From Dimorphilus gyrociliatus (Eukaryota > Animalia > Annelida), in the NCBI GenBank assembly GCA_904063045.1, contig CAJFCJ010000030.1, positions 310,001 to 374,000 of the forward strand: DNA of 64,000 nt. The letters are read 5' to 3'. Below are positions 1-26,834 of this stretch, piece after piece. Position 1 is the first letter of the stretch. Every line of letters starts with the position of its first letter. The notes below the pieces were generated by a model. The model had not been told where the DNA came from, ran no database searches, and saw nothing but the letters and a program-made list of their open reading frames with translations. The position numbers and the translations under genes are program-made.

Positions 1-69
1 CTGATTATTGCTATTACACTTAAACGCTACTTACTTAAATATTAATGTAAATATTTCAATATGTAAATT

Positions 70-94
70 TATATATATATATATATATATATAT
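70..94. repeat. (TA)n microsatellite
   Basis: About 12 TA units, read directly. Confidence 0.9.
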
Positions 95-1566
95 CAATAA
101 AACAATGCGCTTATCATCCAGAATCAGCGCCCTCTGCGCTCAATAAATTCTACACTCTTCTCGTATCAGGGTGGGTACTGATAAGGCAAAATTATGAGTC
201 AGAGCAAGTTGTAATGCTATAACAGTTATAATAATGGCATAATAGGCCACAATTTTTGTGTAAATTCAACTACAAACCACGCTAAATGTAGACGTAAAAA
301 TGTATAAGTTTACACGTAGGTATACACAAAGATTTATATGTATTAAAGATAGTTTATAAGAAAAGTCGCTTAAATGGAAATTAGACATTCAACTGTGCAA
401 TAAATATAAATGGTTAAATATCAGATGTATATTCATATACGTACTTAACATAAACTTAGGAATGCTCATATTAACTATGTTTACCACGGCTATTACACTT
501 TTTACATAATTCGTATTTGTAAAAGAGAAAATTCTCTCTCAGTATAACCTAAACCCTCGTTCCGGTTGATTTTGTTTATGCAAAATGAATTCGAATTAAT
601 TAAAACCGCCTAAAACGTTTGAATAAACAGGTGCATTGTTAGAACACTGCCATATGACCGGGTTGGAAAAAATAGGCGCAGCCTAAACCCAACCTAACCT
701 AAGTGTTTTTATGTAATTTTTTTAAGACGCATACACTTATATATACGAAAAAGGAAAGTTTAAAGGCTCTACTGTATATTCCCTTCTACGTTGATATTAT
801 TCAGCATAGAACTTTTCTCAGTTTGGGTACCCTTGCCTATTAGCATCCAAAAAACTATCGGTGGTCTTGTTGAAACAAGACTTTTTCGTTATGTAACAGA
901 ATACCGTACTATTTAAAATCTGCTTTGCTTTTAGGATGTTAGGTTTTATTTTTTTCTGTATAATTGTTATTATATTCTCCTAATTATAGTAAATTTTCAT
1001 TTATTGCATTGTACTTTTATGCATTTTCCGTCTTTTTTAAAATTCTGTACCCTTATTTTTTTTAACCACCCACACCCCTATCTTTAACCCTCATCCCACG
1101 AAATCCGGTTCTATTATTCTTCATCAGCTATTAAGGCTACCTTGTCGCCATCTACTTTCCTGCTCTTTCTCACCCTTTTTTTTTCCTGTTTTAAAAAGGG
1201 CTTAGCTTCAAGTCCCTGTGAGCGGTGCCTAATCAAAGAGAATCGTATTTTACAGAAATCGTTTTTAAAAAAAAAAACACGAAAGAACAACAACAACAAC
1301 AGTTTATTGTTTCGTATGTCAAATAAAGATGCACTATACTTTAGGCCTCGGTAATTTTATAGCTTTTATACAACATATAAGCTACAAAATTTGTTCATCT
1401 TCTCAATTTTTCCATCTATATATATTAAAATTAATATTTATTGAATAGAAACTATCTTGAAAGACGAAGAACAAAAAGTTTCCCTAGATTTAGCAATAAA
1501 AATGAATAAATAGTCATAAAGATAAGTAGAAAACCTTAGAAGATATAGAGATAGAGAGGCGGGGAC

Positions 1567-1600
1567 AGAGAGAGAGAAAGAGAGAGAGAGAGAAGAGAGA
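1567..1600. repeat. Imperfect (GA)n microsatellite
   Basis: AG dinucleotide run, read directly. Confidence 0.8.
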
Positions 1601-2368
1601 ATCAAATGAGATACAGGGAGGCGAATAAAACGATATAAAGAAAGAGGAAGGTTGAAAAAGAAAAGAAAGAAGATATCTTAAGAAAGATACAAGTTAAAAA
1701 GAGTGGGAAAGAGACAAAGACAAGGGAATCAATTCCCTCAATATCGTAAAAAAATAAATAAACTCGAGTTAGCTCAGGAATTTTAAATAGGCTAATAAGA
1801 GTAATATTTCCCATAAAATGGTATGCATATTGAACAGAAACTGATACGAGAAGAGAATAGAGAAATTTATGATGTTTTCTTTCAAATCAGAAAAAAGTAT
1901 TTTACTATAAGGTGGTAAATGATCTACATCATCTTTCGACAATAAAAAAAAATCAATTTGACCATAGATAACCTGGAGAGAAGTAAAAAGAAAAGTATAA
2001 ACAGAAAGTTTATTTTAACCGTCCAATCTTATTAAGATTAATGTATAATGTAAAACAATTATAAAATCACTTGCTATATCTCTCGATTTATCGTAAAAGA
2101 CTTTACCAGTCCCGTTTTTAAGTATAGGAACCTTATGGTCGGTTTTCACTTACCGCCCCGTACTCCTCTGGTTTCCTTTTTTTATTGTATCTTTTGACCT
2201 AATGCTAGCCTTGTAAATCAATTACATAGAAATTATTAACAATTGTTCTAGAAATTAGGTAGAACGACGTCAGTACCTTTTCTCAAACAAATAATATAAA
2301 GAAATAAAGTAGTAGAGTAAACCGATAGGGGAATACAAAAATATATTTCTGCTAAACAAGTAACAGTG

Positions 2369-2382
2369 GTGCCATCTAGTGA
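2369..2382. promoter_or_regulatory. CTCF-like motif GTGCCATCTAGTGA upstream of the DHRS11-like gene
   Basis: The reverse complement TCACTAGATGGCAC matches the CTCF core CCACYAGRKGGCRC. It lies about 170 nt upstream of the ATG. Confidence 0.45.
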
Positions 2383-2548
2383 ATTATGCCAGAGTTTTTC
2401 GGTGTTTGAAAGCATTTAATTCATGCTATTAATATATTTTAAAAATAGACAGGTACTCGACCGTAAAATTACATGTATTTCCTTGTCGGTTGCTCAATCC
2501 CTTTTGTCCATGAGCCTACCATTTTAGAACATATACAATAGACAAAAT

Positions 2549-4114
2549 ATGGAACGTTGGATGGGAAGAGTAGCTATAATTACAGGAGCTTCGTCTGGAA
2601 TCGGTCAGGCTATTGCCAAGAAATTAACAATTGAAGGAATGGTCGTTTTTGGAGTAGCCAGAAGTTTCAATAAATTAAATGTAAGATTCCTTTTCCATTT
2701 CCATTTATCTTACTAATCAGAATTCCTTGTGGAATCTTGGTAAATTCCCGAATCTAATATCTTTAAAGGAGTTTGCTGACAAACTTGGCCAAGTTAAAGG
2801 AACCTTCATACCTATGCAGTGTGACGTTAGAAAAGAGGATGACATTTTAAAAGTTTTTGCAGAGATCAATGATAAGTATGGTGGAGTTGATATTCTCATC
2901 AATAATGCAGGAATAGCAAAACAGGGTAGCATTTTGGAAGGTAAAAGAGAGAATTGGATGGATATGATCGAGGTAATTAGATATTTAAACTATTGTACTT
3001 GAATTTTTAAGTAGTTCTCTTTCGTTAACAAATTCAAATACTATTGCTGATATTATATTTTTTGCTATAACAGGTTAATGTCGTAGCCTATGCCGATTTT
3101 TGTAGAGAGGCCTATAAATCCATGAAAAAAAAGGGTATTGACGACGGCCATTTAATTAATATTAGCAGGTTAGAAGTGGCCGACTTAATTTAATATTCAC
3201 TAGATGTCACGTTAATCATTAAATTTATATATTATATATATATGTAGATGGTACTATATAGTTTGATTAAGTATAAACTTTCAATTGTTATTGAATGCTG
3301 TTTTAGTACTCAAATAACATGTAGATTGATTATTACAATATTAATTTATTCATAAAATGTAATAATTTTAAGATAATCAACATTGTTATATATTTTACAA
3401 GTGATTCATTCTGGTAGCTTAATTGGACATATTGTTTTTAACCTCCCTTCTTACCATTTTTACGCTGCAACAAAGCACTCTGTAAAAGCACTGACGGAAG
3501 CAATTAGGCAGGAATTGCGTAACGCCAATTCCCATATTAGAGCTAGCGTAAGTAAAGAGTAGAAGAATATAAAGGTAAAGCTAAATATTTAATAATGAAA
3601 CAAATTTCTCTTTCCCAATCCTTAGGCTGTCAGCTCTGGCATGGTAGAAACTGATTTTTTTAACTTAATTCATGGTAAAGAAGAAAGCAAACAGATCTGT
3701 TCATACTTCAAGGTTAATGAAATTCTTTATTTCTTTTACTTTTTCATGTTATAATCCCTATTTTAGAAAGAGCTCATTCATTTATCCTTTCCCTTCATTT
3801 TCTTTTCTGTTGCACTAAAGGTTTCAATCGGCTTTTCCTTTTCTTTTTATCACAGTGTCTGCAACCCGAGGATATTGCGAATACTGTTGTTCACATTATA
3901 CAAGCTCCTCCTCATGTCGAAGTTAGTAATCTTTACGTATGTTATTGCAAATAGGTCTAATCAACACTTTTCGGGTTAAATACACTATATACAATTTATA
4001 TAATTTATACGCGGTTAACTCTATCGTATGTATAAATTATTATTGTTTTTCTTTATTCAATATCCCGTATAGATCAACGATGTCATCATGAGGCCTACCG
4101 AACAGAGAGACTGA
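2549..4114 (+). CDS. DHRS11: Short-chain dehydrogenase/reductase, DHRS11-like, 251 aa, 7 exons (2549-2680, 2769-2972, 3074-3168, 3418-3547, 3626-3712, 3856-3921, 4073-4114)
   Basis: The spliced protein starts MERWMGRVAIITGASSGIG (Rossmann TGxxxGIG) and contains DILINNAG, GIDDGHLINISS, the catalytic YAATK (YxxxK) and C-terminal IMRPTEQRD*. All introns are GT-AG and in phase. AATAAA at 4162-4167. Confidence 0.93.
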
Positions 4115-4161
4115 CGAGAAGGAGAAACTTAATGTTTATTTGTTTTAAAGTAATTTGAAAG

Positions 4162-4167
4162 AATAAA
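4162..4167 (+). terminator. Polyadenylation signal of the DHRS11-like gene
   Basis: AATAAA 48 nt after the stop codon. The hexamer is common in AT-rich DNA, so position is the main support. Confidence 0.5.
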
Positions 4168-4429
4168 ATACAAAATTTTACTTGAAAATATTTAGTATAC
4201 GTTGGCCCTTTGGGCGACAACTTTATCGATCTTTAACTAGGATAATGTATTGTCTTCGAAAAGGATTAGTATCCATGCTAATCCAAAATCTTGTTTACAC
4301 CAGTTACGAAATAGTCTGACGATTCCATTCGCACAAAACACTAAAGATAGAAGAAAACCAATAAGATTCCATGATAAAATTTATCTTTTATCATTTGTAT
4401 TTAATTGTTTATAAAAGAGAGAAATAATA

Positions 4430-7400
4430 ATGAAGATAAAAGGAGTATGTCAGCATGAATCCTGCAAACAATCTTTACAATGTCAATTGGACTTTCTGGA
4501 TAGTAGATCTAATAGTTTGGATGAGAAAGTTGGAGAAACGCTTAATTGGATCTTGAAATGGAAATGTCGAAAGACAATAAGCAATTTGGTTGACTTTTTA
4601 ATTGACATGTTTACGTAAGTTTATTCTAAGAATATCATAGTCAGATAGATACAATTCACAATAATGTCAACATAAATCTTTTGAATAGATATATAGATGT
4701 AAAACATTATATGTGCAATACGTATAACTTTAATTCACTTTTGAAGATATTCGGAAATTGATTGCATCAAAGTTAATGGTTACGTAAAGACTTATGGAAC
4801 AGATGTTGGAATTAGGAATCACGAATGGCTGATGATAAACGATAATGAGGACGAAATAATTGATATTATACAATTCGTTCATTATGGTGAAACCAGTTCA
4901 CCTTTCGCTAAAAGAAGAGTGGATGAGAGCTATCTTTTTTATTTCTGGGACGAATCAGCTAACATTCCAAAACACATTTTCTCTAATTTAGAGGAATTTA
5001 AAAGTTCATTATATATAAATCCTCTAGCGTATAGTATATGCGGTTTATATTCGTCAACTGCTGAGTTTAAAGATATCAAATCAGAATATGGCGTTACCGA
5101 GATTATATTCAATCGAAAGAATCAATTAAATTCTCGTCCAGTTAGATTTAGCGGGTCCTTAGGGAACAACGAAGAAGTACTAGAAAACGGCGATAGGTTT
5201 ATATTCATCGAGCAAATAAGCGGGTGTATTCGAATTCGTATTAATTTACCAAAAAATGGATATTATTCCTTCAAGCTTAACTTTCAAATTGTAGATGGAT
5301 ATGGTAGATTGGGAGATTCAATTTTCGTTTGTTCCTACGAGATTTTTTGCGAGAATGTACGTTATCAACCTCAGCCTTATCCCTTTAATGAAAATTTCGA
5401 ATGGGGTTTAATATCAGTTAATCATGTCTGGAATTTGGGTTTAAAAGGCGTTCTGGGAGGCAGAGTTATCAGTAGATACGGTGTATTAAGATTAGAATTC
5501 CAGGCAGACAATTTGGAAAAGGAGGATGTTAATTTCGAATTACGATCAAATTTTGCAGATATCAATCATTTAAGGCATTCGTATGTTTGTTGGATACATG
5601 AAAATTCAATTATTGTTATTCATATTCGATTTCCGCTCGGAGGATACTATGCTTTAGATGTTCTAGTTAGAAAAAGAAATAGCGACGAGGAGAGGAAACT
5701 TATCGGCTCTTATTTATTATGCGCTGAACAAGCTTGTTTAGATAGGCGTTTATTCCCAGTACTACCTTCTAATTCAATAGGCATCAAATTTTCGGATAGG
5801 AAATATATTAGATTAACAAATACCGAACCATTAATCCATTTGAAAGAATCTGTAGACGACATGGAATTATTAATTGAAAAAGAAAAAACAACGGAAGAGG
5901 GAAACGTCAGAGTCAAATGGACATTATATCATGATGATGATGCAGTTATCGATTATGAAAAACCACACTTTGCCTTTTGGGAGAAGCGATCAGAGCATGA
6001 ATACGTTGTAAAGACTAAACCGGCAGTTGTTGGCATATATTTATTATCGATCGATATTGGTAATTTTGCAATTTATGTTATTGTTATATGCGATTATCCT
6101 GCAAAAAACTTATACCCCTTTCCTAGTATATTAAATCAAACAGAATGGCAAAGATCCTCTGTACGTCTAGTTGAACCATTAAGGGGCTTGATCTGTAAGA
6201 ACTCGATAAGTAAATTTTCTATAAAGCTTCAAGAAAATTGCCAACATAGGGCAAACGTTGCAATGTACGATAATGGAATAAAGAAATATTCTTATGGAAT
6301 GAAACGTAGAGGAGACATAAATAGTTCAGAACCTTTCATATTCTCCCACTTTTCGAGTGCTGTTATAAGTTTAAACAATATTGCATTACTAGAATTCGAG
6401 GTAATTTTATATTCTATTTAAAGTTATAAAATTGGATACTTTCATTGTTTCTTCACAATTTTTATTAGATTGTTGATGAAGACTTTTATGAGAGTATTAA
6501 TGATTGGCTTTCCCTCGAATACGACAGAGCCGAAAAATTCCAAAGCGACCTTAAATATCATGCATATGTATCTCTAATGGCAGAAAATAGTCCAACCCCT
6601 GATACGTTAAAAAAAACGTCATCGGCTAGCGTACGAAAATCACTGTCCCCTCTTGTTGAAACTCCTTTTTCCGAGTCATCTACACCGGATCGATTTGAAT
6701 CGCCAAAAGCAGTATCTAGAAAGAATAGTAACTCTTCTGTTTCCTCTTCAGGCGATGAGCGCCTTAGAAAGTCAAGTCCTCAGCCTATTTATAGAAGTTT
6801 TTCCATTCAAACTTATCATTCTCTACAAACGGAATTAAAGTCTTTGGTTACGGAGTTCTCAGAAAGAAGTCCGACACTCAAGAATGAAGATGATACATCA
6901 ACATTAGTTGGATCTGAAAATGAAGACGAAACGACGGAGGTAATTGATATAGGAGAAAGGATTGACTCTAAAGAAAGGGAACGAACTGATATTAAAGATA
7001 ACGTAGAATATGATAAAGTAAGTAATGCTGGGAGAGAACGTGTAGACAAAATGAATGAAGTTATTACAACTAAAGAAGGAGAAGAAGAATTAAAGGCAAA
7101 ATCTGAGCTCGAAGATGAAAATAAAGAGAACGAAGAGGAAGAAACAAAGGAAATAGACGACGAAGAAAAAAGTAACGAAGGAAAGGATGACGAAGAATTA
7201 GAAGATGAAGAAGGAAGCATCCTAGAAACAAGGTCAATACATACGAATAGTCGAATTTATCCCACATCGGATTCGCATTATTATGCAACAAGCCGATCTA
7301 ATAGTCGTACAACTGAGTTAATTGACATGGTTACGAAGGAAAATACACACAAATTTGAGGCTGATGTTGGAGGCAAGCAAAAAGAACAATTGAATGCAGT

Positions 7401-8514
7401 AGATTCAAGAGGCGATGAGGACGAAGAAGAAGAAGAATTTGAAGAAAGCTGGGAAGAAGAGGGAGAAGAGGAAGAAAACGATGAGGAAGAAGAAAATTGG
7501 CCGGGAAGTTCGCCTAGTAATTACGTCACTGATGATAGTCTCTCTTCCTCTTGCCAATTAATGTTGGACAGTTTGAGTAACCATAGCGCAACTGAGGACT
7601 CAAAAGTAACGACCTCCGACGTTTCTCTAGCAGTATGTCAAAATCGTAGTAGTGTATCATCAAACGAGTCTTCAAACTATAGTAAGAATGGCGAGAATTG
7701 CGTACCTAGAGAGGATATAATAGAAGCAAGAGCAGGTATGTATAATTGTTTTATTGTATGCATATCCGCTTATTTACGTTTGTCGAGCAATTTCGGTACA
7801 CATCTCATGATCGACGTTAGTTTATTTCAACGCGACCCCATAAATGAGTTATTACCGTTAATCACTGGGCAACTGGTTATTTTCACCGCTATTACAGACT
7901 TATTCTGTAAACGAGAAGCGCATGTTGTATATATTAAAATAGGATATACTGGGATCACATGTTTCTTGTAGGCTAACATTTTTCTCTGTTTATTGCATAT
8001 ATATAATTCGCTCTCCACAGCTGTAAAACTAATAATTATCCCATTTTTTTTAGATTTGGAGTATTTTACAAGTATATTGAATGCTAAGGGTTTGAAACAG
8101 GTTTTAAAAGTACTTGATTTAAGGCCAAAGTTGAAATATCATTTGAGAAAGGATTATAAGAAGGCTGAAGAATTGATAAAGGACTTGGACGAATATGAAA
8201 TTACTGTCCATAGGGTTCTTAAACTGAACAATAATTCTGTTGCTGAATTGATCAGCTATAGAAAGCCATCTCCAATTATTCACAGAATCCTACAAGCCGT
8301 ATTACTAGTTTTCGGTTTTCCCGAGAGGAAAACAAGGGATTTCGTCAAAGTAAAGAAACTTTTAAAGCAGCAGAACCTACTCAAGAGGATTCACGACACG
8401 AAACCGGAAATGATTGAAACTTCGTTGGCACAGGAGGCCCATCAACTTATCACAGATATAGACATGGACGAAGTAAAAGATAAAAGCGCCGCAGCAGCAG
8501 CTATTTTTAAATGG
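4430..8514 (+). CDS. KY/hillarin-like protein of at least 1189 aa: degenerate transglutaminase-like domain, KY-type Ig-like repeats, acidic Ser/Glu-rich linker and C-terminal dynein-MTBD-like domain. Exons 4430-4614, 4747-6400, 6469-7735, 8054-8514; last exon not resolved
   Basis: Four ORFs of the track join in phase through GT-AG introns (AC|gtaagt..ag|A; GAG|gtaatt..ag|ATT; G|gtatgt..ag|AT). The transglutaminase-like pattern reads EKVGETLNWI...CIKVNGYVK...NHEW...IID...YLFYF. Repeated Ig-like units read IRINLPKNGYYSFKL...VCSYEI...PYP...WG and IHIRFPLGGYYALDV...IGSYLL...LFP. Confidence 0.8.
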
Positions 8515-9733
8515 GTAAGTTATAATTTATTCATAGAATTCGCTTAAGTAATATCTAGCTTTTTTTATAAAAGTGATGGACAAGTCAAAAGATTTAACAA
8601 TTTTAGCTTTATGCGGTATATTTTAATAGGGTGTTGCTCTTGACTTTCATCTTTCATTACCTATTTAAAAGTGAACTATAATTAAGCGTACGTATCATTG
8701 GGTTTGTACTAATTAATTTATAGTTACAACTCATGATAAAACAAAACTTGAAAACTTTTTGAAATATTGATTGTTAATTTATTATTGAAAAATCTTGAAA
8801 ATGTCAGAAAAGGAGGAAAACTAGAGAAAATTTCTTTTACACTTTTTTTTTGCCTCTGAATTTCTTTATTTAGTACTTTTTATTATTTTTTTATTTTTCA
8901 TTATCCATTCTTAATGTTCGTTTACTTTCTTTGTTCCTTCTTACAACCGGAAGTCTACAAAATCCGGTGGGAAAAGAAAGCGATTGGTATACAATAGGCC
9001 TAGTATCAAAAATTTCTGGAGAAAGAAAAGCCTTTTTCACAGAGATTGTATTGGTTTATACATTTTTTGTTCCTCTTCTTCGGATATATCCCCGAAGGAT
9101 GGCAATTCTGTATTTTCTTAGCATAAACACTGTATCCCCAAGACGGGTTTGTTCCACTTGAAATTCTAGTTCCATCGTTCCTTTTTATAACGGTACTATT
9201 TACAGACGTAGAGACGCCTTACATTGAGTTCAATAATTATAATAATTACTTGATAATATTATTTATAAATAAACTATTGTAATACTGTAATGGCAGTTTT
9301 TAATTATTCATGAGTCTATTACCCTTAAATTGATCCATTTATGAAAATCTTGTTTAATATCATTATACTTTTTTGAGGCTTACATGCTATAGGTAAAACA
9401 AGTGAACCAGAGAATTATTTCCTTTTTCCTCTCACAACAAACATGAATGAATAATAATTACTCTCTCATGAATATTAATATAAAATGCAAAAAAAACTCT
9501 TTTGCAATAGAAAGATACATCTACAATAATTTTTTTATTGAGATAAGTATTCAATCATTTTAATGCATTCTTTACATACAGCTGCAGTCTTCCCTGAGAG
9601 TAGTCACTCAATGATTAACGGTGGCGCCATCTATTCAGCGCAACAATCGTACAGTGTCATTCAGGGGAATAAAAGCTTGTAATCCAGATCGTTCCTTTTC
9701 TTTGAAAACTTTCTGCATTTGAAAAAAGAAAAT

Positions 9734-12700
9734 ATGTTGAACAAACTCAAATTTATTGCATTGTGTTGCATTAGCTATGGATTAAGTTTGGATTTGCGTA
9801 AGTCTTAACCGATTTAAGTTTGCTTCAAGCAATTCTTTTTTAAAACGTTTTATATATAACTTTTTATAAGGGTCATATATACTTATGAATATAGATATAC
9901 ATGTATACGCTTATATAGTTATTACACTATAATGATGTACTTTACCCATAAATACATGAATAATTATACATAAGGCATGTTCTGTATATTTTCAGGATAT
10001 AAATGATTCATAAGAACTCTTTTGCCGGCTCTTATTTATTTTTCTTCCGCGCGGCAAAGTTCTTGTTTCCAGCAATTATGTAAACTTAGGAAATAGATAC
10101 AAATAACGAAAAATAATTTATAACCACTCACCTATAAATTCCTTTCATATAAATACGAATTTAATTATTATCTATTTAAACAAACTACTGTACGTTGAAG
10201 TATAAACGGAAGAGAACTTGAGAAGGATATGTTTTTTCTCTTTAAAGTACAAACTTCTTCAATTAGAGAAATTTGCATATAGTAGTGTCAATTTTTAACT
10301 TTTTTTTTACACATACAGCATCAGACAAAGTGATAATACTTGCCTTTTTTTTATTATTATTATTTCTTTTAAACAAGCTATTTCCATTATTTAATTATCA
10401 TCGTCGAAACTATTATTCTATATCCTCTTTTCGCTTATTCCAAAAAAAAATCGGTCTCATTTCTATCGATTTCCTTATGTCAGCTGTCAATTTTAATCAT
10501 GTTCAGTTCATTCTCTTTACTAATGCTTGTCTCTTGTTTTCACTTTTTGTTTGCTTCTTAAGAGATAGGTTAGAGAGGGAGAGAGAGAGGGGATTATAAT
10601 TTATTCCCTTTAATACTTTATTTTATAATAAAACCTAAAAAAAAAGTTCTTCATTTCAAAAAGAAGCTTGTATCAGTTGGGAAAAAAAGATACAAAGCAG
10701 CTTCCATACCAGTGTACTATAATAGTATGAAAGAGAAAAGCTATTTAATCTACGCATAAACAAGGTTTTGAACTTCGGAGTTTACAGAAAATCATCGATT
10801 TCAAAAAAAATTCTAAATATAAACATAGAAGAATTTTCTTTTCCAAATAAAATCAATCAACTTATTAATAAAGGAAATGGCAAAGCTTGCAAAGTATATT
10901 TCACATTCAGGAATAAAACCTGCTTATTTGTTCAATTAAAAAAGATGACTTTTATTTGTACTTTTTGTCTATTTAATTTAACAATTACTCCTAGCAATTT
11001 GATTCTAGATTGACAAACGTAATTGTTTTCCTTTAACCTAGTTTCTTTTTTTTTTTCGTGCAGAATTCAGTTTTAAGATGAGGCTAAGGAAAAATGAAGG
11101 CTTATTATTGTGTGTAATTAAACATATTTTTTAAAGTGAGCGAGTGAGTAAGAGTGATGGTGTGTGATAGAAAAACAAAGGGAAAGAGAATAAGAAAGAG
11201 AGGAAATACCGTTTTGTGAAAGATACATATAAAGCATTTCTTAAAGATTTATTATAAAGTTAGTTTATAGAAATTAAATTCTCAATTACATAAAAAAGAT
11301 ATGTATGAGAAATTTTTCTCTTGGATTTTCTGATATAGTCTTACATCAATTACTAGCAGTATACTGTTGATAATAGATATAAATTGGTCTATTTGATGTA
11401 TACAGTTCTCGCCTTAGGCTGGTGTGAAGAAAACCTTTTTTGGTAGTCAAATATAGTTATATTACAAATTTTTGCAGAAGGCAATTGTAAACATTGGAAA
11501 ACATATTATCTGAAATAATACGCATGCGCCCTAAGTGTTTTTTCCTTATGAAGCGAAAAAATGATAATTAACTTCAAAAACAATGCCACTTATAATATTA
11601 AAATAAGAAATATGCATCAAAACAATATATTTTCGTTTTTGTTCGTTTTAACTCTCTGAAAGACTTTTAGAAAGCACCTGCAGTAAAAGAGGAGATGTTG
11701 CGTAATTCTCAATAGATAGAAATAGGAAAGGGCGCGAGTTGATTGAAATCGCTATGGCAGCATTAAGAGCTACTAGCAGTCGGAAATTAAAGAATCTTTT
11801 TCCACATTTCTTTTCCCACATCAGACCTTCATCTTGTCCCTTTCCTAAACATGACAATTTGAGCTTATTACGAGCACCACTTATGCGTTTTTTATGCTGA
11901 ATTTTATAATACACACATACCGCTTAGAAGACAAAAGGAAAATTCTTCCTCTAACTCTATCTGTTATCAGGAGGAGAAACTAGCTATACAAAAATTGCCC
12001 CCAACATCGTACGGTTTTATCTCGATAGTTTCTAGCAAAGCCCCCACTGCTCTTCCTCAAACCGACTCTTGTTTATTGTACAGTTTTCTTTACAGAACCT
12101 CTATAAAGTTAGCGCCCTATAGATACAAACATTCGTATAACACGTAGTTTTATCCTAAGCATTTCCATTCTCTCTTTTCCTAAAAGAGACTATAGAAAAG
12201 CATGTCGAGGAAAAAATTGACAATAGATAAGTTTACAGGTGTAATAAATTATGAGCGAAACGGAATCAAACTGCGTAAGTGCGCATAGTCAACAGAATCT
12301 TAATGGACAAGTCGATTACCAGTGTCAGGTGCGCTATATTTTCGATAGCATCGAATTTCTTTCGAACGTATGCTATAATACAGGCAAAAAAACTCCTCGG
12401 GATGAGTATATGTATACAATGAATATATACAGTCAAAGGCGCGATACAGCGCCTCAGGTTAGACGGAAGGGCAAAGGTATAGTAAAATTGCGGGCGGAAA
12501 GAGATATACGTAAGACGTATTCCATTGCCTATCCCACTCTTCATTATGTCTGTCTATCTCTCATTCTATTTTACTATTTTCACTTAAGAAAAACGCCCCC
12601 GTTTTTTTTTTTACTTCTTATCCTTCTTTACCAGTTTTATAAGTTTTTATATTCCAGTCGATTATATAAATACAGTACATCGGATATTAAATGAAATATT

Positions 12701-15582
12701 TCTTTTTTTTGTTATGTAGCTATATATTTTCCCTTAACCGTCTCCTATAATAATTAACCCTTGGAGCAATACTCGTCCAGGTACTAAGTTATTTCAATCA
12801 ATTAATAATTCAAGTTCAAACTAATGGTAAAGAATATTTTAGATTTGTTACCAGTGTTTTTTTTTCATTCATTATTACCGAAACTGTTGTTAAAGTTGAG
12901 ACAAAAAGGAATATTTAATAATATATGCTACTTTTTCACTCGCTTGTCTGCTTTTTTTCTTTATTCTCTTTTAAGAGAGTAAATTAAAAAGTGATTAAGA
13001 ACAAAAGGTCTCATATTATATCATAGTCGTTGTTAATTACAATGTGGTCAATGGATTGAAGTATATCCTTATATATCGGTTCAAGTATCCTCTCTGACAT
13101 TGTCTGACTGAATAAAAAGGTATTTAATAAAATATAATAGCAATGCAGATACTCTTATTATTGACTGTATACTTTACTCTCGTTCAACATCGGAATACGA
13201 TACGGTCTATAACTATATCGAATCGGAAGAAGCGTCTCGAGGGCGTTTAATAAGTTTGAAAGCAATAAGGGCAAGAGAAGAGTGTAAGTCTGAAAACATG
13301 TACTATTATCTATACTAAAAATCGACAGAGGCGTCCCGAACCCTACTGAATAATGAATAAGAGAGACAAATCAAAAGACGCTGTAAAACGAACAATCAGA
13401 AGCGGCTTGTATTATTTACGCTAATCGTGAATAATTAACGATCGACGCCGTCAACAATGAAAGAGGTACTTGTGAAAAAAAAACGATTCTCGTCTCCGCA
13501 GGTTTGTTCGAACGATCGATTGAGTGTGCTGTAAGGCGTTAATAAATTTCGACGCTGCAACGAATAGGCATCCGCTTCCTGTCTGAAAAAGCTCTTTGGA
13601 GAAACAAACATATAGGTTTCTCTTTGAGAGGATTAGAGAGAGAAAGGTATGTTTTACAAAAAACATTATTAAGTACACTATACACGTCTTTTCTCCTACG
13701 CTTGCCATGTTCATCTTTACCAATATGCATCTAATAAATATAGTGTAAGCTTAGAATGAAAGATGGCGGTAAGAAAAATCTAATCTAGAAAGCCCGCTTC
13801 CAACTGATTACATGTAAACGTGAGATGCTTAATACGTCGCTGTTGTAGGCCTATAACGAAAAATTTTTGTCCTATATGGAATTAGTAATTCGACTACACC
13901 AAAGTTTCGTCTTGGGAGATTGTTAATTAGCAGATTGAAGAAGATAAAAGCAGTTCGTTTCACTCCAATTAGCAAGAAGAAGGAGTTAAAAAAAAAACAT
14001 CTGTACCAGAGAGGCGTTTCTTTTTTTTTGACGATCTTCGGTAAGCGAGTGCGGTTTGTCGATAACGGATTTTTCATTGAAGGATAAAATATCTCTTTCC
14101 TCCTCTCTGCTTCCTTTGCAATATAACATAGAAAAAGAAATGTCAAGACAGAGAACAAAATTTTCTTCTTTGTACCCATCTTTTCTTTCTCCAAGAGTGT
14201 ATGCTTGACACATATAAGCACACGCACACGTTCAAATACGTATAAACACACGTGCTTATAAACTCTCTCCTTCCTTCTCTTAATCGCTTTTTCCTCTAAT
14301 AGTCCTGCAAATTTGGAAGAGGATTAACGCCTCAAAAACCAGCTTATGCGGGTAAAAAGTCGACGTAAATCATGTTTCACTACAGTTTTTTGTAGACGAG
14401 GTGGAAAAAAAACCCTTGTTGCCACCTTTGACCCTGCCAGCCAAAATCTCCTCCCCTCATGCGAATGTTGATATGATGTTGTAGGGTCAAGGTTAGAGTA
14501 TTCTGACTAGAGAATTAGTCAACACTCCTAATTTTACTTGTGACTTTATGTATGAGATTTCCATAATCATTGTATATGATATATATATATATTATCTTTT
14601 ATGTAGATATCCTTTACCTAATTTAAATATTAATATTCAGGGAAATATCCTATATTTAATAGGTCAGAAAAAAAGTAAATAATAAATATGTGCTTAAAAA
14701 TACGGTAAACACCGCAATACGTAATATATTTAAACTTGTATATGAATATATATATTTTATGATATGGAACAAATGGAGAGTTTAAGAGATGATGATATAT
14801 GCCTATAGTCATTTTTCGGATAGTAGCCGAAGCCTTCAATTTTCGCCCAATTAATCTTAGCCAATAAAGAGAAGACCTTTGACTTCCGAAACGATTGATC
14901 CTTTAAAGTTAGATGTCGCCACCGTTTATTCTCCATTTCTCTAGTTCTGCATCGAGTAGAAGATTTCAAATGAATAAATATAATTTAATAAGAAATAGAG
15001 GTATAAGAAAAGGGTTATAAATACATTATCAATATGCGAGGGATAGTGCGTAATTTAATATACGCATGACCGGTCATGAATGGATTATTAATCGTAAAAT
15101 AAACCCCTTCCCTCGCTCTCTTGTAACCTCGTTTCCCTTTCCCTTATATTACTTGCCTAATTTATTAATCCAAGCAAATTTATATTGGAGCAAAGAAAGG
15201 GAAGAGTTTGTTTTAAGTAGGCCTAAGGAAATGCTCCTCAAAAAAATTCAACGCCTCTTCAATTAGGCGACATATAAATTTTTTACCCTAATAAGGGGAA
15301 GAATGGCGTAAATTTAAGGATGTTTCTTGGCAAGTAGTCAGTAGGGGAAGTAGATAGAAAAATTTAAAGGGCTGTAAGGGAACGGATAAAGAGAGCAACG
15401 ATTTATCCATCCTAAGCAACTGTATATTCCTCTAATTAACTTTTATCGAATCGTGTCATTGTTAAGGACTAGTAATTGGATTGTGATACTATATACATGA
15501 TCGAGCAGCCACATATCAGTTGCTGCCTGACGTCCTCTTGTTAGGGAGAAATCACAGATACTTCCACAACCTCTTTTTCCCT

Positions 15583-15622
<40 letters not shown>

Positions 15623-18600
15623 CACTACGTCGCCCCTTTACCCTTCAATACTCCAATACTTTTTATTGTGAGTCGTGAGAGTACTTATAACTTTTGCAGC
15701 TGTCTTGATCAAAGCATATTTACAATGAATACTTTATCTTCGTGCTTCTTATTTAACGAGTAGGTAGGAAAGAAATCCTTAAGCGATGAATTGCCAAGGA
15801 TAATCTCTAGTGTCTTATCCGAAGGGAAAATAAGCACGACAGACAGGCTTATAATTACCAAGTTTGCAACCGTATAGCCAAGGACAGATAATCTTTTCCT
15901 CTAGTGTTAAACAAGCCCGCTAACCATTTGTAACATTGTATAATCTATTCAAGGAATATAAATATACAGTACTATAAACCAAACCATGCCTCACCATATC
16001 TTTTGTGTATATAATAAACTCAAATATGTTATCTTTATTTTCAGAACCTCTGGTAGAAAATCTTACATGCGACACGGAACCCTTTAAGTTGAATTGTGGT
16101 CATGATGGTCTGGCAGTCTTGACTTCTGCCACATATGGTAGAAGTTTACATCCCAATAGATGTGAAACGAAAGCCGATCACTGTAAAGAAGATGTTCTAA
16201 AGCCGTTGGATAACAAATGTTCTGGAAGGAGAAAATGTGAAATACCTAATTTGGCTAGTCACTTTAAGAACTATTGCGGTGAGGGGGGATTTCGTAATGC
16301 TCTAACCGCAAAATATAATTGTATTCGAGGTAAAGTTAAGAAATTACATCTTATTTGCTTTTTGATGCATCAACACTTACATTGTGGGCGTGTTGAGTAG
16401 ACGCCCTCATTCAAATTCTACATTAATTAGACGTTTTTGTTCTACACAGATCCTCTCGATTTACAGTTTCAAATTAAAACATTATGCGACATTTATAGTG
16501 ACTCAATTGAAATTAAAAGTTTATACGGGGTTATTGCTAGCGAATGGCTGAAAGAAACGGGAAAATGCTCTGACGGTCAAAAATCTAGAGCTATAAGAAT
16601 AATGGGAGAAGAGGGACAAAAAATTAATCTAACATTGTGGGATTTTACAAAAAAGGATTCAATCCAACCATGTTCAAAACCTTACGGAAAATACAAAGTC
16701 TTAGACTCTAAAGAAATGAATGAACAACAAATTTGCAATCGCTATGATCAGCGAACTGTCAATATTGGCTTATTCGACGCTAACCAAGTTGAAATATATT
16801 TACTATATAGGAAAGATCACACATTTTTATTGGAATATCAAGGTTTGTTTTTAAGCATAGACTAAAATATTCCCCCTAGATTTTCTTTTCCCTTTTACAT
16901 CTTTGTCTTTCATCTTATCCATTTATGAAGAGGTCTTTAATCAATCAATACAAAAATGAAACTTAATTAATCATTTAAGATAAGTAGAGAATAAAAAAAG
17001 CACTCTATCTTGATGCCTCTTTCTTATACAAAAAATTGCATAAATAAGGTATAAATCTAGTCAATTCTTTGGTTATTCTTTTTTTTTATTTTCTCTTTTA
17101 GAAGAGATTTGATAACATAATTCGCAAGAGATACTCAATAAACGCTTAATTGAACTTAATTAGTTTGATTTATTATTCGAGGTACTTTGAATTCCTTTTA
17201 GAGTATTAGGAATTGGCCAAATAATTTATCATAAACGAAACGAATATGAGGATTTAATTGGTTTTGTTAATATCTAAATAAGAGCATGTTAAAAAAAGTA
17301 AGATAGTCTAAAATATTATATACAGTATATATATACAGTATATAAAAAGGACAACATGATAAGATATAGATACTACTTTTATAGTCTTCTCTATTTAAAA
17401 ATCCTTAAGAAGTTTCATTTTTAAGAATTAAAGGAATAAGGGAAATAATTATTATTTATTATAATTGCCCAGTGCTTTACTTTAATTTTCTATTTTCTAT
17501 TTATTTGCTTAAAGTACTTGAAAAAATAGTCTACTAGTTGTTACTTTATTAAATCTAGATGTGAATAATCAATCAGTAATTGGGACATCGTTCAGCGTCA
17601 ATACCGTCTCTAACCTATTAAATATTCAAAAGTTGAGAAACGCTTAGGGTTGTTAACATTACCTCTAAAAGTATCTATTTGCATATCTAGGCATTTCTAT
17701 ATTTAACTGGATACAATTGTCAATAGTATCTCTTTTGTTTTTTAACAATAATTTTTTATTACAATAGTTGTTGGTTGTCCTCTGCCAAAATTCGATCGAA
17801 GAAAGCAAAGGGTAGAAGTAACAGGTCGAATTGCCAAGATTATTTGCTTGCAATCTGAAGAGGAATGGTCTCTAACTTGTGATAATAACAAGTGGTTTGG
17901 AAGGTCCGGTAATTGTAGTGAAAGTAAGTCAAAACATATGCATCATTCAGCTTAAACGAATCCGACAATTCCCAATTGCGAAATCTCTAAACATCTCTTA
18001 AGGAAATCAACCGCAAAAAAAAAGAAATAAAAAATAGTGCCATCTGTCGATTATCAGTGCTGATAAAATATCAATTAAACAGTTTTATCAACATTAGTAC
18101 AGCAAAAAAAAAACTGTTAATAATAGCTATCAGTACTTTTTTAAAATATATACTTAAATCGATCTTTAATTGTAAGTTTATCAAGTATATTAATGAACTT
18201 TACTATTTTCTTCCTATATAAATTTATACGACTCTGTGCGCCATCTTTTATTTATTTCTGCTCTCATGTTTTACAGCTGCTGCCGCCACTGGACTATTCG
18301 AATCAATTCCATCTGGTATATGGATTGCGATAATACTCGGAGTAGCAGTCATTCTGAGTGTGGCAATAATGACTTTTGGGGTCTATATTCTCAGATGGTT
18401 GGTCACTTTATTTCCAATTAAAATATGTTGCAGACCCGAAATGTATCTGTTTATTATGACAGGCAAAGAAACCAATATTTAAAGCGACAACTGGTGCAAA
18501 CTCTACATACAGGAAACGCTCAAGACAAACACTCTTTTACAGATGTCACTCACGAGCCGCCTTATAACGCGAATACAAAAACATGTGAAATTTGTACACA

Positions 18601-18745
18601 ATACTCTCGCCGCCCATACGGTACATATAAACCAGAGCACATCTACGAGAGTCCGCATAATCCCCACAAAGACGAAGGTCGACCCACATATTTTGAACTG
18701 GATTCAACTTTACGCTCTAAGGCAGCAGATATAGCAAGAATATAA
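9734..18745 (+). CDS. Single-pass receptor: signal peptide, SUEL/Gal_lectin domain, CUB-like domain, short CCP/sushi-like module, TM and Tyr-motif tail. Exons 9734-9797 (tentative), 16045-16329, 16450-16842, 17768-17923, 18277-18397, 18463-18745
   Basis: SUEL pattern: C..FKLNC...SATYGR...C...C...LDNKCSGRRKCEI...C...LTAKYNC. CUB-like GEEGQKINLTLWDF. CCP-like GCPLP...C...WSLTCDNNKWFGRSGNC. TM IWIAIILGVAVILSVAIMTFGVYIL. Exons from 16045 on are in phase. The signal exon MLNKLKFIALCCISYGLSLDL+C|gtaagt has the matching phase 1 but lies 6.2 kb upstream, so it is less certain. Confidence 0.78.
15588..15613. repeat. (TG)n microsatellite
   Basis: About 13 TG units, read directly. Confidence 0.9.
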
Positions 18746-21288
18746 AGAGTAGTAAAATATAGTAAAATAAGATAGTAAGTTATACATTATGTATACTGTA
18801 TCTATAAAATCCATTTTACAATATACAGTATAACTAAAGTATAATACTGTTTTTTATAAATCAAAACAACAACTGTGAAGAATTTTTAAAGGGAGGAAAA
18901 ACTTGACTGTCTTCTCTAAAGTTTCCGTCTCATAGCAGTGCAAACATTTTTAAATATTATATATCCGTTTCATAATCATAAATGAATATAATTATGATTA
19001 TTTTTCTTAATTTTCTTTAAATGTATTTGTAATTGTTATATAATTTATTCATAAAAATGTATTTCCATAATATATTTACATTTTTCTTTAACTAATTATT
19101 AAGAGAAAGAAAAAATTGATTATCATAAGGAAAAAAACTCACTGTATAATTTTTTTTGAGCAAAAAAGAAGAAAAACATCTCAAATCCTATTAATTACTT
19201 GGTGAGATAAACTTGATTAAGTACTAGTAATCAAAAAAAAAAAGAGAAAAAAATAACCGTATAGAGAGAGAACAAAACTGATTATTCTCGTATACCGTGT
19301 GAAAATATAATAAGAAATAATTAATAAAATTTGTTATCGCAATATGTACATCCTTTCCTTTATATAAAAATAGATAATAAAAAAATCGCTGGTGCTAGAA
19401 AAAAATGGTCTTGTACTAGTTTAATAAATGTTCTATCTATTTTTTTTCCAACTGTCCCTGCTTCTAATCTCTATTACGTTGCTTGGATGTTTGTTCTACC
19501 TTATTTTTTCAGTCGAACGACAGTGGGGAACTACTTGGAAAAGTAAATGCATATTTTTTATGCTCTAAATATTTTCTTTAATAAATATTCAGTTTCAATT
19601 AGAAAGTATATTATATAATTTGTATTATATTTCCACTTTTAAATGAAAAAAAAGAACTCTTACGCAAAAGTTTAGAAGAAGAAAGAAGGAAGCAGAACAC
19701 TGGGAAAGATTGATTTAAAATTTAATCTAAGCATATCGCTAACCGGCTGTTAAGCTAATCCTCCGCTACCCTTACCTTCATCCCAAAAAAAAATTCAAAT
19801 TATTTCAGATATTTCTTTCTTGCTTAGTGTAGTCTTACTAAACAACGAAATTATAGATACTTAAGTTCATTACTAAGAAGTGGAAGGGATTTTTTTCTGT
19901 TTATAATACATTTATTCGATATAAAATTTAAAAGGAGTAAGATAAAAGGAAGAATGTTATAGCTGTTTACCTCTTTTCTGCTAGAATATTGTTTAACATT
20001 ACCTTCTTCTAAAATGTTTAACATATCTTGTTTACTTATATTTAAAAGAAGTCTCTCCTTTGAACAATTCTTTAATTAGATTGTTATTATTATCTAATAA
20101 ATAGTTACAATAGTTTTCAAGACACTATATACTTCTCTCTAAATAGAAAGTCTAAGCTATTATTGACGAATAATAGGCTTAGATTCATATTATACATGTA
20201 TATACGTGAAAAAGTTGAAAGAAGATATAGAAGAGAATGAAAAAAATGTCTTTCTCTTAAAGAGAAAGAAAATATCATATTTATAGGATAAATATTGTAA
20301 TAATAATCTATTTTTACATTTCAATATATATATCAAATTATTGTTTTGTATAGATAACAGCAATCAACTTTACATTTGTCTTATAACGAAAGATAGATTT
20401 TTTTTTTTACATTGTTGCATTTTTTCCCCTAATGCAAAAAGCTGGAGCGTTTTGATTTTATCATGTAATCATAGACCTGATTGGTGAAGCTGAAAAAGTA
20501 AAAAAGCGCATAATATTCCCTTAGGAGGATTACTAAAAAAAAAAGATATTTTTCCAATAAAATAATAACACGTACACGAGATAGTTAGCCATTTTCTGTA
20601 TAAAAAATATGTGCTAAAGATTTATCTTCGTTGTCCTTATATAATATATATACATTTATATACTAATATATATATATATAAACTGAATACAGTATGTCAA
20701 TGAAGTGTTACGATAAATAATAAATCATTCTCAACCTTTGGCAAAAAGGAATCGTCTGTAATTGTATGATATAAGCTGTGTTTATTATGAAATATTAATC
20801 TACACCTTACATTAAGAAGAAAATAAAATAAAAACAAAACAAATAAATATTTTAGACGCTTTTTTCAACTATGCGTTTAATATTTTTCCTTTTCTTAACT
20901 ATTTTGCATTTATTAAACAATGCTAATAAAAGTAAAGATATAATGATAAATTCTAGTGAAAGACTTATAAAGATAGATAGAAAGGGAAAAAGAGGAAAAC
21001 ACAATAAAAGAGAGAGAGAGGGAGGGAGAGAGGGAATCTTAATGTGCACGTGACACAATGAATCGTTCTTTTTTATCAAAAAAAAAATATGAAAAATAGT
21101 TGACTCAGTAAGAATTAATGAGTAAGTCTCTATATCATATGTGAAATAACATATTGCTTGAGAAATTAGACACCATAAAAGTCGAATAGAAGTAGCCTGT
21201 GTTATTTTATTTCGTTATATTTTTAGTGTCTTTCCATAAAGTTCTCTAAGAAGTATACATTTTTTTATTTGACAAAAATATCGGAACT

Positions 21289-22018
21289 ATGAAGTCTCTA
21301 CTACTTTTATTTACGCTTTCTCTTCTCTGCACTGAAATCAGTTAGTTCTCTCTTCTTTTTTTGTAACTATTTGGATCACTTGTATATAGTATATACTATA
21401 TATATATTTGTTAACAAATCTATTTAATACAGAATTGTATATATGTATATGGATATATTTACTTTTTCTTTTATTCGAATAGGTGGCAGCTGCCCAGAAA
21501 ACTTTGTACGATTTGCAAATTCCTGTTACTACTTTATTACATCCAGATTGACTTGGTTCGATGCTGATCAATATTGTACATCCTTAGTTCCAAAAAGTTA
21601 TAATTGCCATCTTGCAGCCATTGAATCTTCAGCTGAGCAGGACTTTCTGAAGAATCATATCTTAAACAATTCAGGTAAGAGAGATATTCAATCTATCAAT
21701 ATCATTTACAAACTTTATATATATTTAGAATTAAGAAGTCATAGTTTTTTGACATCTGGAAATAATTTGGATAGTAAAAAAGGATGGTCTTGGTCTGCAA
21801 CTAACAGAAGATTCACATACGCCAACTGGGGTCCAAGTGAACCTTCTTCAGGAAAATGTGTTCAGGTATGCTTAATAAAACTATAACATATTTATAGCTA
21901 AATTTTATATAAAATGTGTAAATTAATATTTCAGATGCACAAAGATGATAGTTTTAGATGGAGATCATTGGACTGCGAAGATGAACCTAAGATGTTTGTA
22001 TGCGAATATGAAATTTAA
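21289..22018 (+). CDS. Secreted single-domain C-type lectin (perlucin-like), 4 exons (21289-21340, 21483-21674, 21729-21865, 21935-22018)
   Basis: Signal peptide MKSLLLLFTLSLLCTEIS. CTLD motifs: CPENFVRFANSCYYF, TWFDADQYC, HLAAIESSAEQDFL, YANWGPSEP, CVQM, WRSLDC, FVCEY*. Splice phases are consistent. Confidence 0.92.
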
Positions 22019-25728: not shown

Positions 25729-26834
25729 TTATAGAGCAGTATCCTTTGTTAATCTTGTGGGTGTACTATGACGACAAGCTAATGTATATTGGTTCTTGAT
25801 GAATAAACTCTTCACCAAGGACTTCATTCGCTTGCTCATACATACATAGATTATAGGGTTGATAGCTGAATGCACAAATGCGCACAAGTGAGTTAGCAGC
25901 ATGACGAAAATATATTGACTTTTCCTAAGAAAACTGTCGTTCATCCTTATAACCTCTTCCAAGGAAATTCCAAAGTGAGGAGCCCAGGCAATCGTAAAGG
26001 CGAAAGATATAACAACAATCATCCTAGCTGCTTTTCGACGACCTAAACCAACACTTCCAGCATTTATAGGCGTTCTTCTTAGTTTTATCACTATAGCTAT
26101 GCAGGTTATTAAGATAATAAATGTGGGTATTAGGTAGACGCTAACAAATAGGAGAATAAAATATATCAGTCTGAAACCGGTTTGATAACCCAACCAATTG
26201 TCTAATATATCAAAATTAGGAGAACAAATTCTTCTACTAATCTTTCCATAATTAGAACTGAGTTCAAAAGACTGTGTCGTGGCCATTAAATAAGGCGTCG
26301 TTAATAAAAGAGGAAATATCCATGTGACTGCAATCACTTTTTTGGCTCTTGATAACTTTGACTGAGTAATTGTTGAAAGTGGATGAACAATGGCGGCGTA
26401 TCTGAAAACAGCATCTTTAAACAGGAACTCTGTTAGTATTAATATCTGTTTGTATACCTCTCTAATGAAATAGCTGCAAGTGTAAAGATGGAAGAAAATA
26501 CTAACGAAGGCTGCAGATATGAAAGAACACCACAAAGAACGTCCGATAATAATTCAACGGTAAAAGTTGAGCAATCTGCAGTATATTCTACTAATTTAAA
26601 AGGCATTACGACTATTCCAATTAAAGCGTCTTGTACTGCCAGATTGAAGATATAAATGTCGCAGGCGCATCGTATCTGGCGCCATATCGATATAATTATT
26701 ATAGAATTTCCAATAGCCGTTAAAATACATATAAGTACATATAAACACACTAAGAAGATTCTTATGCTCTGCTCCTGAGTAAAATCCGTGTACGGAAAGC
26801 TCTGGTTCGTGCATATACTATAATTCTGAACCAT
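25729..26834 (-). CDS. Class A (rhodopsin-like) GPCR of neuropeptide-receptor type, 349 aa, 2 coding exons (26834-26458, 26401-25729)
   Basis: Motifs GN in TM1, NLAVQD in TM2, SIFTLAAISLERYAAIVHPL (E/DRY, split by a 56-nt phase-2 intron), W..P in TM4, YLIP in TM5, AWAPH in TM6 and SAINPIIY (NPxxY) in TM7. Confidence 0.92.

Follow-up and report, generated by a model that had tools for sequence, protein, structure and literature searches.

A homologue of the dynein stalk tip as the C-terminal domain of a KY-like protein in the annelid Dimorphilus gyrociliatus, and its putative role as a motor-free microtubule tether

What is a relative of the dynein stalk tip doing at the end of a protein that has no motor? 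The microtubule-binding domain (MTBD) is usually regarded as a dynein-specific part, the affinity of which is set by the stalk. The question is raised by a 64,000-nucleotide stretch of the Dimorphilus gyrociliatus genome (contig CAJFCJ010000030.1, positions 310,001 to 374,000; hereafter the window), the DNA of which is AT-rich and eukaryotic in composition (GC about 0.30). A first-pass annotation, made from the letters alone, had described a CC1-MTBD-CC2 unit joined to a non-motor scaffold of the KY/hillarin type, and the peptide that it quoted is encoded exactly at 8054-8514 on the forward strand.

The gene, on the forward strand throughout, has five exons with a predicted product of about 1199 residues. 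Exon 1 (4430-4614) is a predicted one, with an ATG start, 61 codons plus 2 nt and a GTAAGT donor at 4615; its splice to 4747 is inferred from frame, and the length of the contig from RNA run X5 is compatible with it. Exon 2 (4747-6400) ends at a GT donor at 6401, and exon 3 (6469-7735) follows an AG acceptor at 6467-6468, its 3' end being set by an RNA joint. Exon 4 (8054-8514) comprises 153 whole codons in phase 1, such that the G at 7735 and the AT at 8054-8055 together encode Asp; it closes with TGG (Trp) at 8512-8514, directly before a GTAAGT donor. Exon 4 had been described as the last resolved exon; the RNA joins it to a fifth, the coding part of which (9582-9614) encodes LQSSLRVVTQ and a TGA stop. 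The 3' UTR reaches to about 9714, with an AATAAA near 9668. Since exon 5 adds only these ten residues and the stop, the exon 4 module is the C-terminal domain of the protein.

Public RNA contigs mapped to 7000-12990 contain both the 7735/8054 and the 8514/9582 joint, each with GT..AG borders, in all four runs. Contigs of X5 match the window without a mismatch, and one of 3826 letters spans exons 3, 4 and 5; X2 and X4 come from related species and X1 from a marine metatranscriptome. Such intron-less forms cannot derive from genomic DNA, and therefore the gene is expressed and the 7735/8054 splice predicted in the first-pass annotation is correct, with exon 4 in the same transcript. An orthologous contig of a sister species (L001) has a similar exon layout and 84% protein identity. 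In exon 4, 63 of the 89 differences from this contig fall at third codon positions, which indicates purifying selection on the frame, and the coding part of exon 5 is 100% identical. A word-index protein search matched only two open reading frames of the sister species (P0001 and P0164) and no annotated protein of this gene.

Several features of the surrounding DNA were observed along the way. Two intronic blocks, 7793-8053 and 8891-9366, are 92% and 91% identical to the sister-species contig, as against 81% for coding exon 4; both are single-copy in the window and lack codon periodicity. An Rfam search of positions 1-20000 returned nothing, and the predicted fold of block 7793-8053 is unremarkable (z -1.1). 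The next gene begins with an ATG at 9734, 120 nt past the stop of the KY-like gene, in a signal-peptide-like exon (MLNKLKFIALCCISYGLSLDL) whose end at 9797 is joined to an exon at 16045 with a SUEL-lectin domain. It thus starts nearly upon the 3' end of the KY-like gene, with the downstream contig starting at 9685 and the KY-like contig ending at 9714. Pfam matches elsewhere in the window include a short-chain dehydrogenase as upstream neighbour (2549-3562, forward strand), a C-type lectin domain exon (21443-21886, forward) and a rhodopsin-family GPCR (25729-26834, reverse).

Pfam and similarity searches of the gene were made exon by exon, with single exons as queries. Exon 2 opens with what resembles the C-terminal half of a transglutaminase-like core (DCIKVNGYVK..NHEW) and continues with KY-type Ig-like domains, matched by Ig-like_KY (PF23265) at E 1.1e-18 in two to three stretches. 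Exon 3 encodes a Ser-rich and then strongly acidic (Glu/Asp) linker that matches no Pfam family. The Ig-like repeats and the acidic linker of the earlier description thus stand, but its transglutaminase-like domain shrinks to a remnant: Transglut_core (PF01841) has no match in the exons of the gene even at E<=1, and tblastn with KY-like relatives (Owenia P0027) aligns the end of the core only. Within the predicted intron 4615-4746 there is a Cys-bearing remnant, in another frame and with in-frame stops (..NIICAIRITLIHF*RYSEIDC..), that resembles the catalytic-Cys segment of a transglutaminase core; it looks as if part of the ancestral exon has decayed into this intron. Given a core half without a Pfam match and a stop-ridden remnant in the predicted intron, the transglutaminase-like domain is probably a vestige and is predicted to be inactive. 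As had been stated, there is no AAA+ ring: by Pfam and by translation, none of the five exons encodes an AAA+ module, and together they give only KY-type parts, the linker and the module. We also considered whether the W180 domains of hillarin are the same as this module and set the idea aside; judging from the WQLL and GWGP motifs that the consensus of long relatives shows in the Ig-like region, the W180 domains are more likely counterparts of the Ig-like_KY repeats.

Homology of exon 4 to dynein emerges from the family rather than from the single sequence. Pfam gave only noise matches to exon 4, with no MT domain (PF12777) even at E<=10, and phmmer of exon 4 alone against the PDB placed three dynein MTBD regions at E 0.2-0.8, mixed with uL29 and Brr2 noise. 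The first real lead was a feature search of the ESM Atlas, in which PF12777 was found on 28 of the 30 nearest clusters; some short fragments already bear this label through automatic annotation. Exhaustive phmmer against 1.8 billion representative proteins returned 137 at E<=1e-3, the longest of 1861 residues, and therefore no dynein heavy chain at that threshold. We aligned 60 module segments (alignment A1), with the window sequence as the first row and no dynein sequence included. Its consensus reads TIAEIRSY..PPP.VH.VM.AT.LLLG...W...Q.L...G...LKRR...SAGAATFY.W., with E64, P71 and W153 invariant and Y68, G87, W96 and S144 nearly so.

When the A1 profile was searched against PDB sequences, the best 60 of the 64 matches at E<=1 were all dynein heavy chains and always at the stalk tip, led by DNAH6 (E 1.2e-12) and the yeast cytoplasmic MTBD (2e-11). 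The aligned region takes in about 45 residues of CC1, and the conserved columns, including the invariant E, P and W, align to dynein, so the dynein-like order of motifs listed in the first-pass annotation is real and goes beyond chance. Comparison with the Pfam dynein profile, which had been proposed as a check, thus gave no match for exon 4 by itself; the profile of its family does match dynein. PF12777 itself was detected in one of 34 long relatives (E 8.5e-4). The divergence is considerable, with identity to dynein under 20%. At the position of W96, which 97% of the family retain, the window protein has Phe, and a Lys found near the start of H1 in the family and in DNAH6 is absent from the window sequence (LNNNSVAEL). 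Exon 4 is a genuine, diverged homologue of the dynein stalk tip, comprising the distal part of CC1 and the six-helix MTBD.

The predicted structure agrees. An AlphaFold2 model built on A1 reached a pLDDT of 85.2 and a pTM of 0.69. After two short helices of low confidence at the start of exon 4 (pLDDT about 61), the model has a long CC1-like helix (8125-8217; module residues 24-54) that superposes on dynein CC1 in 5ayh, 3wuq and 3err, followed by a globular MTBD-like bundle (8221-8514; residues 56-153) with a net charge of +5 and a pI of 9.65. The bundle helices occupy residues 59-66, 73-85, (90-93), 96-106, 108-114, 122-132 and 137-152, with pLDDT 90-97 over residues 60-153; in the dynein MTBD, six short helices (H1-H6) make up the globular domain (PMC6629372). 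Read from the sequence, the CC1-like helix retains a 3-4 hydrophobic seam (L30, Y34, A37, I41, L44, V51, L55). Of the CC1-MTBD-CC2 unit first described, the end of CC1 and the MTBD are borne out, but CC2 is absent.

All 50 best Foldseek matches in the PDB are dynein MTBD or stalk structures. With VIA-align, 121 residues of the model superpose at 2.4 Å on a mouse MTBD bound to microtubules (6rzb_C; Z 13.1); Z is 12.5 for DNAH7 and 11.9 for RSP2 in 7jtk_C. Independently of Foldseek, we compared the model with 48,161 representative chains, 11 of which reached Z>=5: seven dynein MTBDs and four non-dynein chains, 9fqr_Xl (Z 8.4), 9e5c_2e (7.5), 7jrj_I (6.5) and 9ya2_L (6.4). Middling Z scores are common for helical models; because only these 11 chains reach that level and the next stands at 4.1, the fold assignment made on the predicted model is specific and not a generic helical match. 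A shape search of the ESM Atlas returned nothing above TM 0.38. Of the four non-dynein chains, 9e5c_2e is a Trypanosoma brucei doublet protein and 9ya2_L a Toxoplasma intraconoidal-microtubule protein, both weaker fold matches.

How widely is the module distributed, and on what hosts? Among the 58 well-covered relatives, 40 carry it at the C-terminus (tail of at most 40 residues), with tails mostly of 7-40 residues. We looked up 30 matches by name and found molluscs (Pinctada, Patella, Haliotis, Plakobranchus, Sinanodonta and Potamilus), annelids (Owenia and three Dimorphilus gyrociliatus proteins at about 30% identity), amphioxus and the tunicate Styela. Their labels are 'uncharacterized', 'KY', 'kyphoscoliosis peptidase', 'CLCA1-like', 'mucin-3A-like' and 'trichohyalin-like', and none of the 30 has a dynein-based name; the uncharacterised mollusc KY-like models with similar C-termini, mentioned in the first-pass annotation, are among them. 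Since no vertebrate or insect KY/hillarin occurs among the 30 match clusters so named, the proteins of those groups probably lack the module. Pfam found Ig-like_KY in 23 of 34 long relatives, Transglut_core in 14, VWA in four, CARD in three, CLCA in two, and TNFR repeats and MT in one each. A co-option specific to KY scaffolds, as originally envisaged, does not fit this range: because the module sits on KY, CLCA/VWA, CARD, TNFR-repeat and other hosts, it is a mobile domain of C-termini, as opposed to the product of one fusion with a KY protein. The KY-like protein P0002 of Pinctada imbricata (1437 aa) contains the module more than once, in three matched stretches, with an apparent second transglutaminase-like fragment between copies.

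Three matches to exon 4 are of another kind: two chytrid EFCAB5 proteins (P0076 and P0108) and a GAF/EF-hand protein (P0060). With E values of 4e-5 to 6e-6 in the search of 1.8 billion proteins, they are nearer to exon 4 in sequence than any dynein, and their H1-H2 segments resemble that of the window. Alignment of A1 with the P0076 module by hhalign gave a probability of 98.4 and E 4e-15. In turn, the P0076 module matched residues 1310-1471 of 9fqr_Xl, a chain of 1509 residues from bovine sperm axonemes, as well as dynein MTBDs at about 3e-5 and residues 446-556 of Chlamydomonas RSP2 at 4.7e-4. We take 9fqr_Xl to be EFCAB5, given that its 1509 residues fit the length of EFCAB5 (about 1500) and that chytrid EFCAB5 matches the chain; its table name, 'A-kinase anchoring protein 14', appears to be a labelling error. 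By profile comparison and superposition of our model, an internal domain related to the dynein MTBD in sequence and fold is thus present in EFCAB5, from chytrids to cattle, and in the RSP2 of Chlamydomonas. EFCAB5 is described as specific to sperm, where it is part of the stalk of radial spoke 3 (RS3) and bridges it to RGS22, LRRD1 and STKLD1 (PMC11779644). An MTBD-like domain goes unmentioned both in that study and in the EFCAB5 knockout paper (PMC12423330).

What, then, might the module do? Our preferred reading, which we put at somewhat better than even (roughly 55%), is that of a putative attachment site, static and without a motor, for microtubules or a structure built from them. The basic globular bundle would dock the scaffold onto such a structure independently of nucleotide, and the acidic linker could act as a flexible tether between this foot and the Ig-like/pseudo-transglutaminase part. 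In dynein, CC1 and CC2 form an antiparallel coiled coil with the MTBD at its end, and the affinity of the MTBD depends on a shift of one helix against the other by half a heptad (PMC6629372). Here the protein stops ten residues past H6, leaving no CC2; a CC1/CC2 registry shift cannot operate, and a dynein-type affinity switch is therefore impossible in this module. The CC1-like helix keeps its hydrophobic seam and so must pack against another helix; this amphipathic helix may pair either with the two short helices at the start of exon 4 or with a second copy of the protein. Dynein MTBDs bind microtubules at the tubulin intradimer interface, and the basic charge of the bundle, shared by its family (median pI 9.2), is in keeping with attachment to the acidic surface of tubulin. 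EFCAB5-type modules are no less basic, however, and net charge was therefore dropped as a means of telling lattice binding from docking.

The most serious alternative, which by analogy with the radial-spoke proteins we regard as plausible at clearly less than even odds, is that the MTBD fold was inherited by descent and may now serve for docking between proteins or as a structural part, without contact with the tubulin lattice. EFCAB5 and RSP2, the nearest non-dynein relatives with solved structures, appear to work in this way, since they reside in radial spokes and their described contacts, including the RS3 bridges of EFCAB5, are with proteins and not with the tubulin lattice. The closeness of exon 4 to the chytrid EFCAB5 and GAF/EF-hand proteins, the hhalign result, the matches of the P0076 module to 9fqr_Xl and RSP2, and the superposition of our model on both point the same way. 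Also to be counted against the preferred reading are the missing CC2, without which the bundle is held differently, the Phe that stands before H3 where the family and dynein have Trp, the absence of the H1 Lys, and the failure of the Pfam MT model and of single-sequence phmmer to give a significant dynein match. Set against docking, the RS3 stalk sits on the doublet and all solved relatives, the four non-dynein chains included, come from microtubule-based assemblies, a point weakened by the over-representation of large cryo-EM maps of such assemblies in the PDB; furthermore, dynein in its microtubule-bound conformation (6rzb_C) gives the best structural match.

The remaining explanations fare far worse. 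A chance or generic likeness of helical bundles, with the module an unrelated helical domain, could draw on the non-significant single-sequence searches, the commonness of middling Z scores among helical models and the empty ESM Atlas shape search; it is very improbable in the face of the profile E value, the placement of the best 60 of 64 matches in dynein and at the right place, the gap in Z between MTBD-type chains (6.4 or more) and all others (at most 4.1), and the invariant E, P and W columns common to the module and dynein. That exon 4 is a recently captured or mis-assembled dynein fragment, or part of a different transcript, has only its similarity to dynein to recommend it and is likewise very improbable, given a same-species contig spliced through exons 3, 4 and 5, the same structure in the sister species, relatives with the same C-terminal position in several phyla and the low identity to dynein.

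The tether reading can be extended, tentatively and with rather less than even confidence, to the family as a whole. The dynein foot may not be unique, and could instead be part of an ancient superfamily of motor-free MTBDs that has mostly escaped notice, with an EFCAB5/RSP2 branch and a mobile C-terminal branch that would act as a constitutive, switch-less microtubule tether. As part of the same proposal, the mobile branch would extend over spiralians, amphioxus and tunicates, on KY-like, CLCA/VWA, CARD and other scaffolds.

In open-access full text, we found no paper in which a dynein-type MTBD is linked to KY, hillarin or transglutaminase-like proteins or to RSP2/EFCAB5, and no description of a motor-free dynein-type MTBD. 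The present analysis adds the RNA-proven exon structure, the C-terminal stop, the vestigial core, the host range and the EFCAB5/RSP2 link. An MTBD that stands alone, with neither CC2 nor a motor, would amount to a naturally occurring version of the domain that is 'always on or always off'. If it is a tether, it would represent a new class of microtubule-associated module on invertebrate scaffolds that are now named 'uncharacterized', 'KY' or 'CLCA1-like', and it offers a testable function for the C-termini of these proteins. The finding also points to an unnamed MTBD-like domain in RSP2 and in EFCAB5, a protein of sperm motility.

The window protein can be set beside three known systems. With the KY/hillarin/LTD-1 family it shares KY-type Ig-like domains (PF23265) and a core remnant in matching order, and in amphioxus, molluscs and annelids the names 'KY' and 'kyphoscoliosis peptidase' are given to relatives that end in this module. 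It differs from that family in having no LIM domain and no Pfam-detectable core, the segment expected to hold the catalytic Cys being missing from the spliced model.

The dynein stalk tip (PF12777; PDB 6rzb, 3err and 6rza) resembles the module in its six-helix bundle after a CC1-like helix, in the H1 Glu, the (K)PP turn, the H6 Trp and the Ser-x-Ala run of H6, and in a basic surface. Unlike dynein, the module has no CC2 return helix, AAA+ ring or registry switch and is undetected by the Pfam model; its family has motifs of its own, GKTG..LKRR after the first Trp and SAGAATFY-W in H6, and in the window protein Phe replaces that first Trp, before H3.

EFCAB5 (RS3; 9fqr Xl, about 1310-1478) and RSP2 (7jrj/7jtk, about 434-575) are, like the window protein, non-motor proteins with the same fold, and the H1-H2 segment of chytrid EFCAB5 is near that of the window (KLNNN..(S/A)EL.SYRKP.P.IH....AVL..FG). 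GAF, DPY30 and EF-hand domains are absent from the exons of the window gene by Pfam and present in P0060. In the axonemal proteins EFCAB5 and RSP2 the domain is internal and flanked by GAF, DPY30 and EF-hand parts, whereas in the window protein it forms the C-terminus of a KY-like scaffold.
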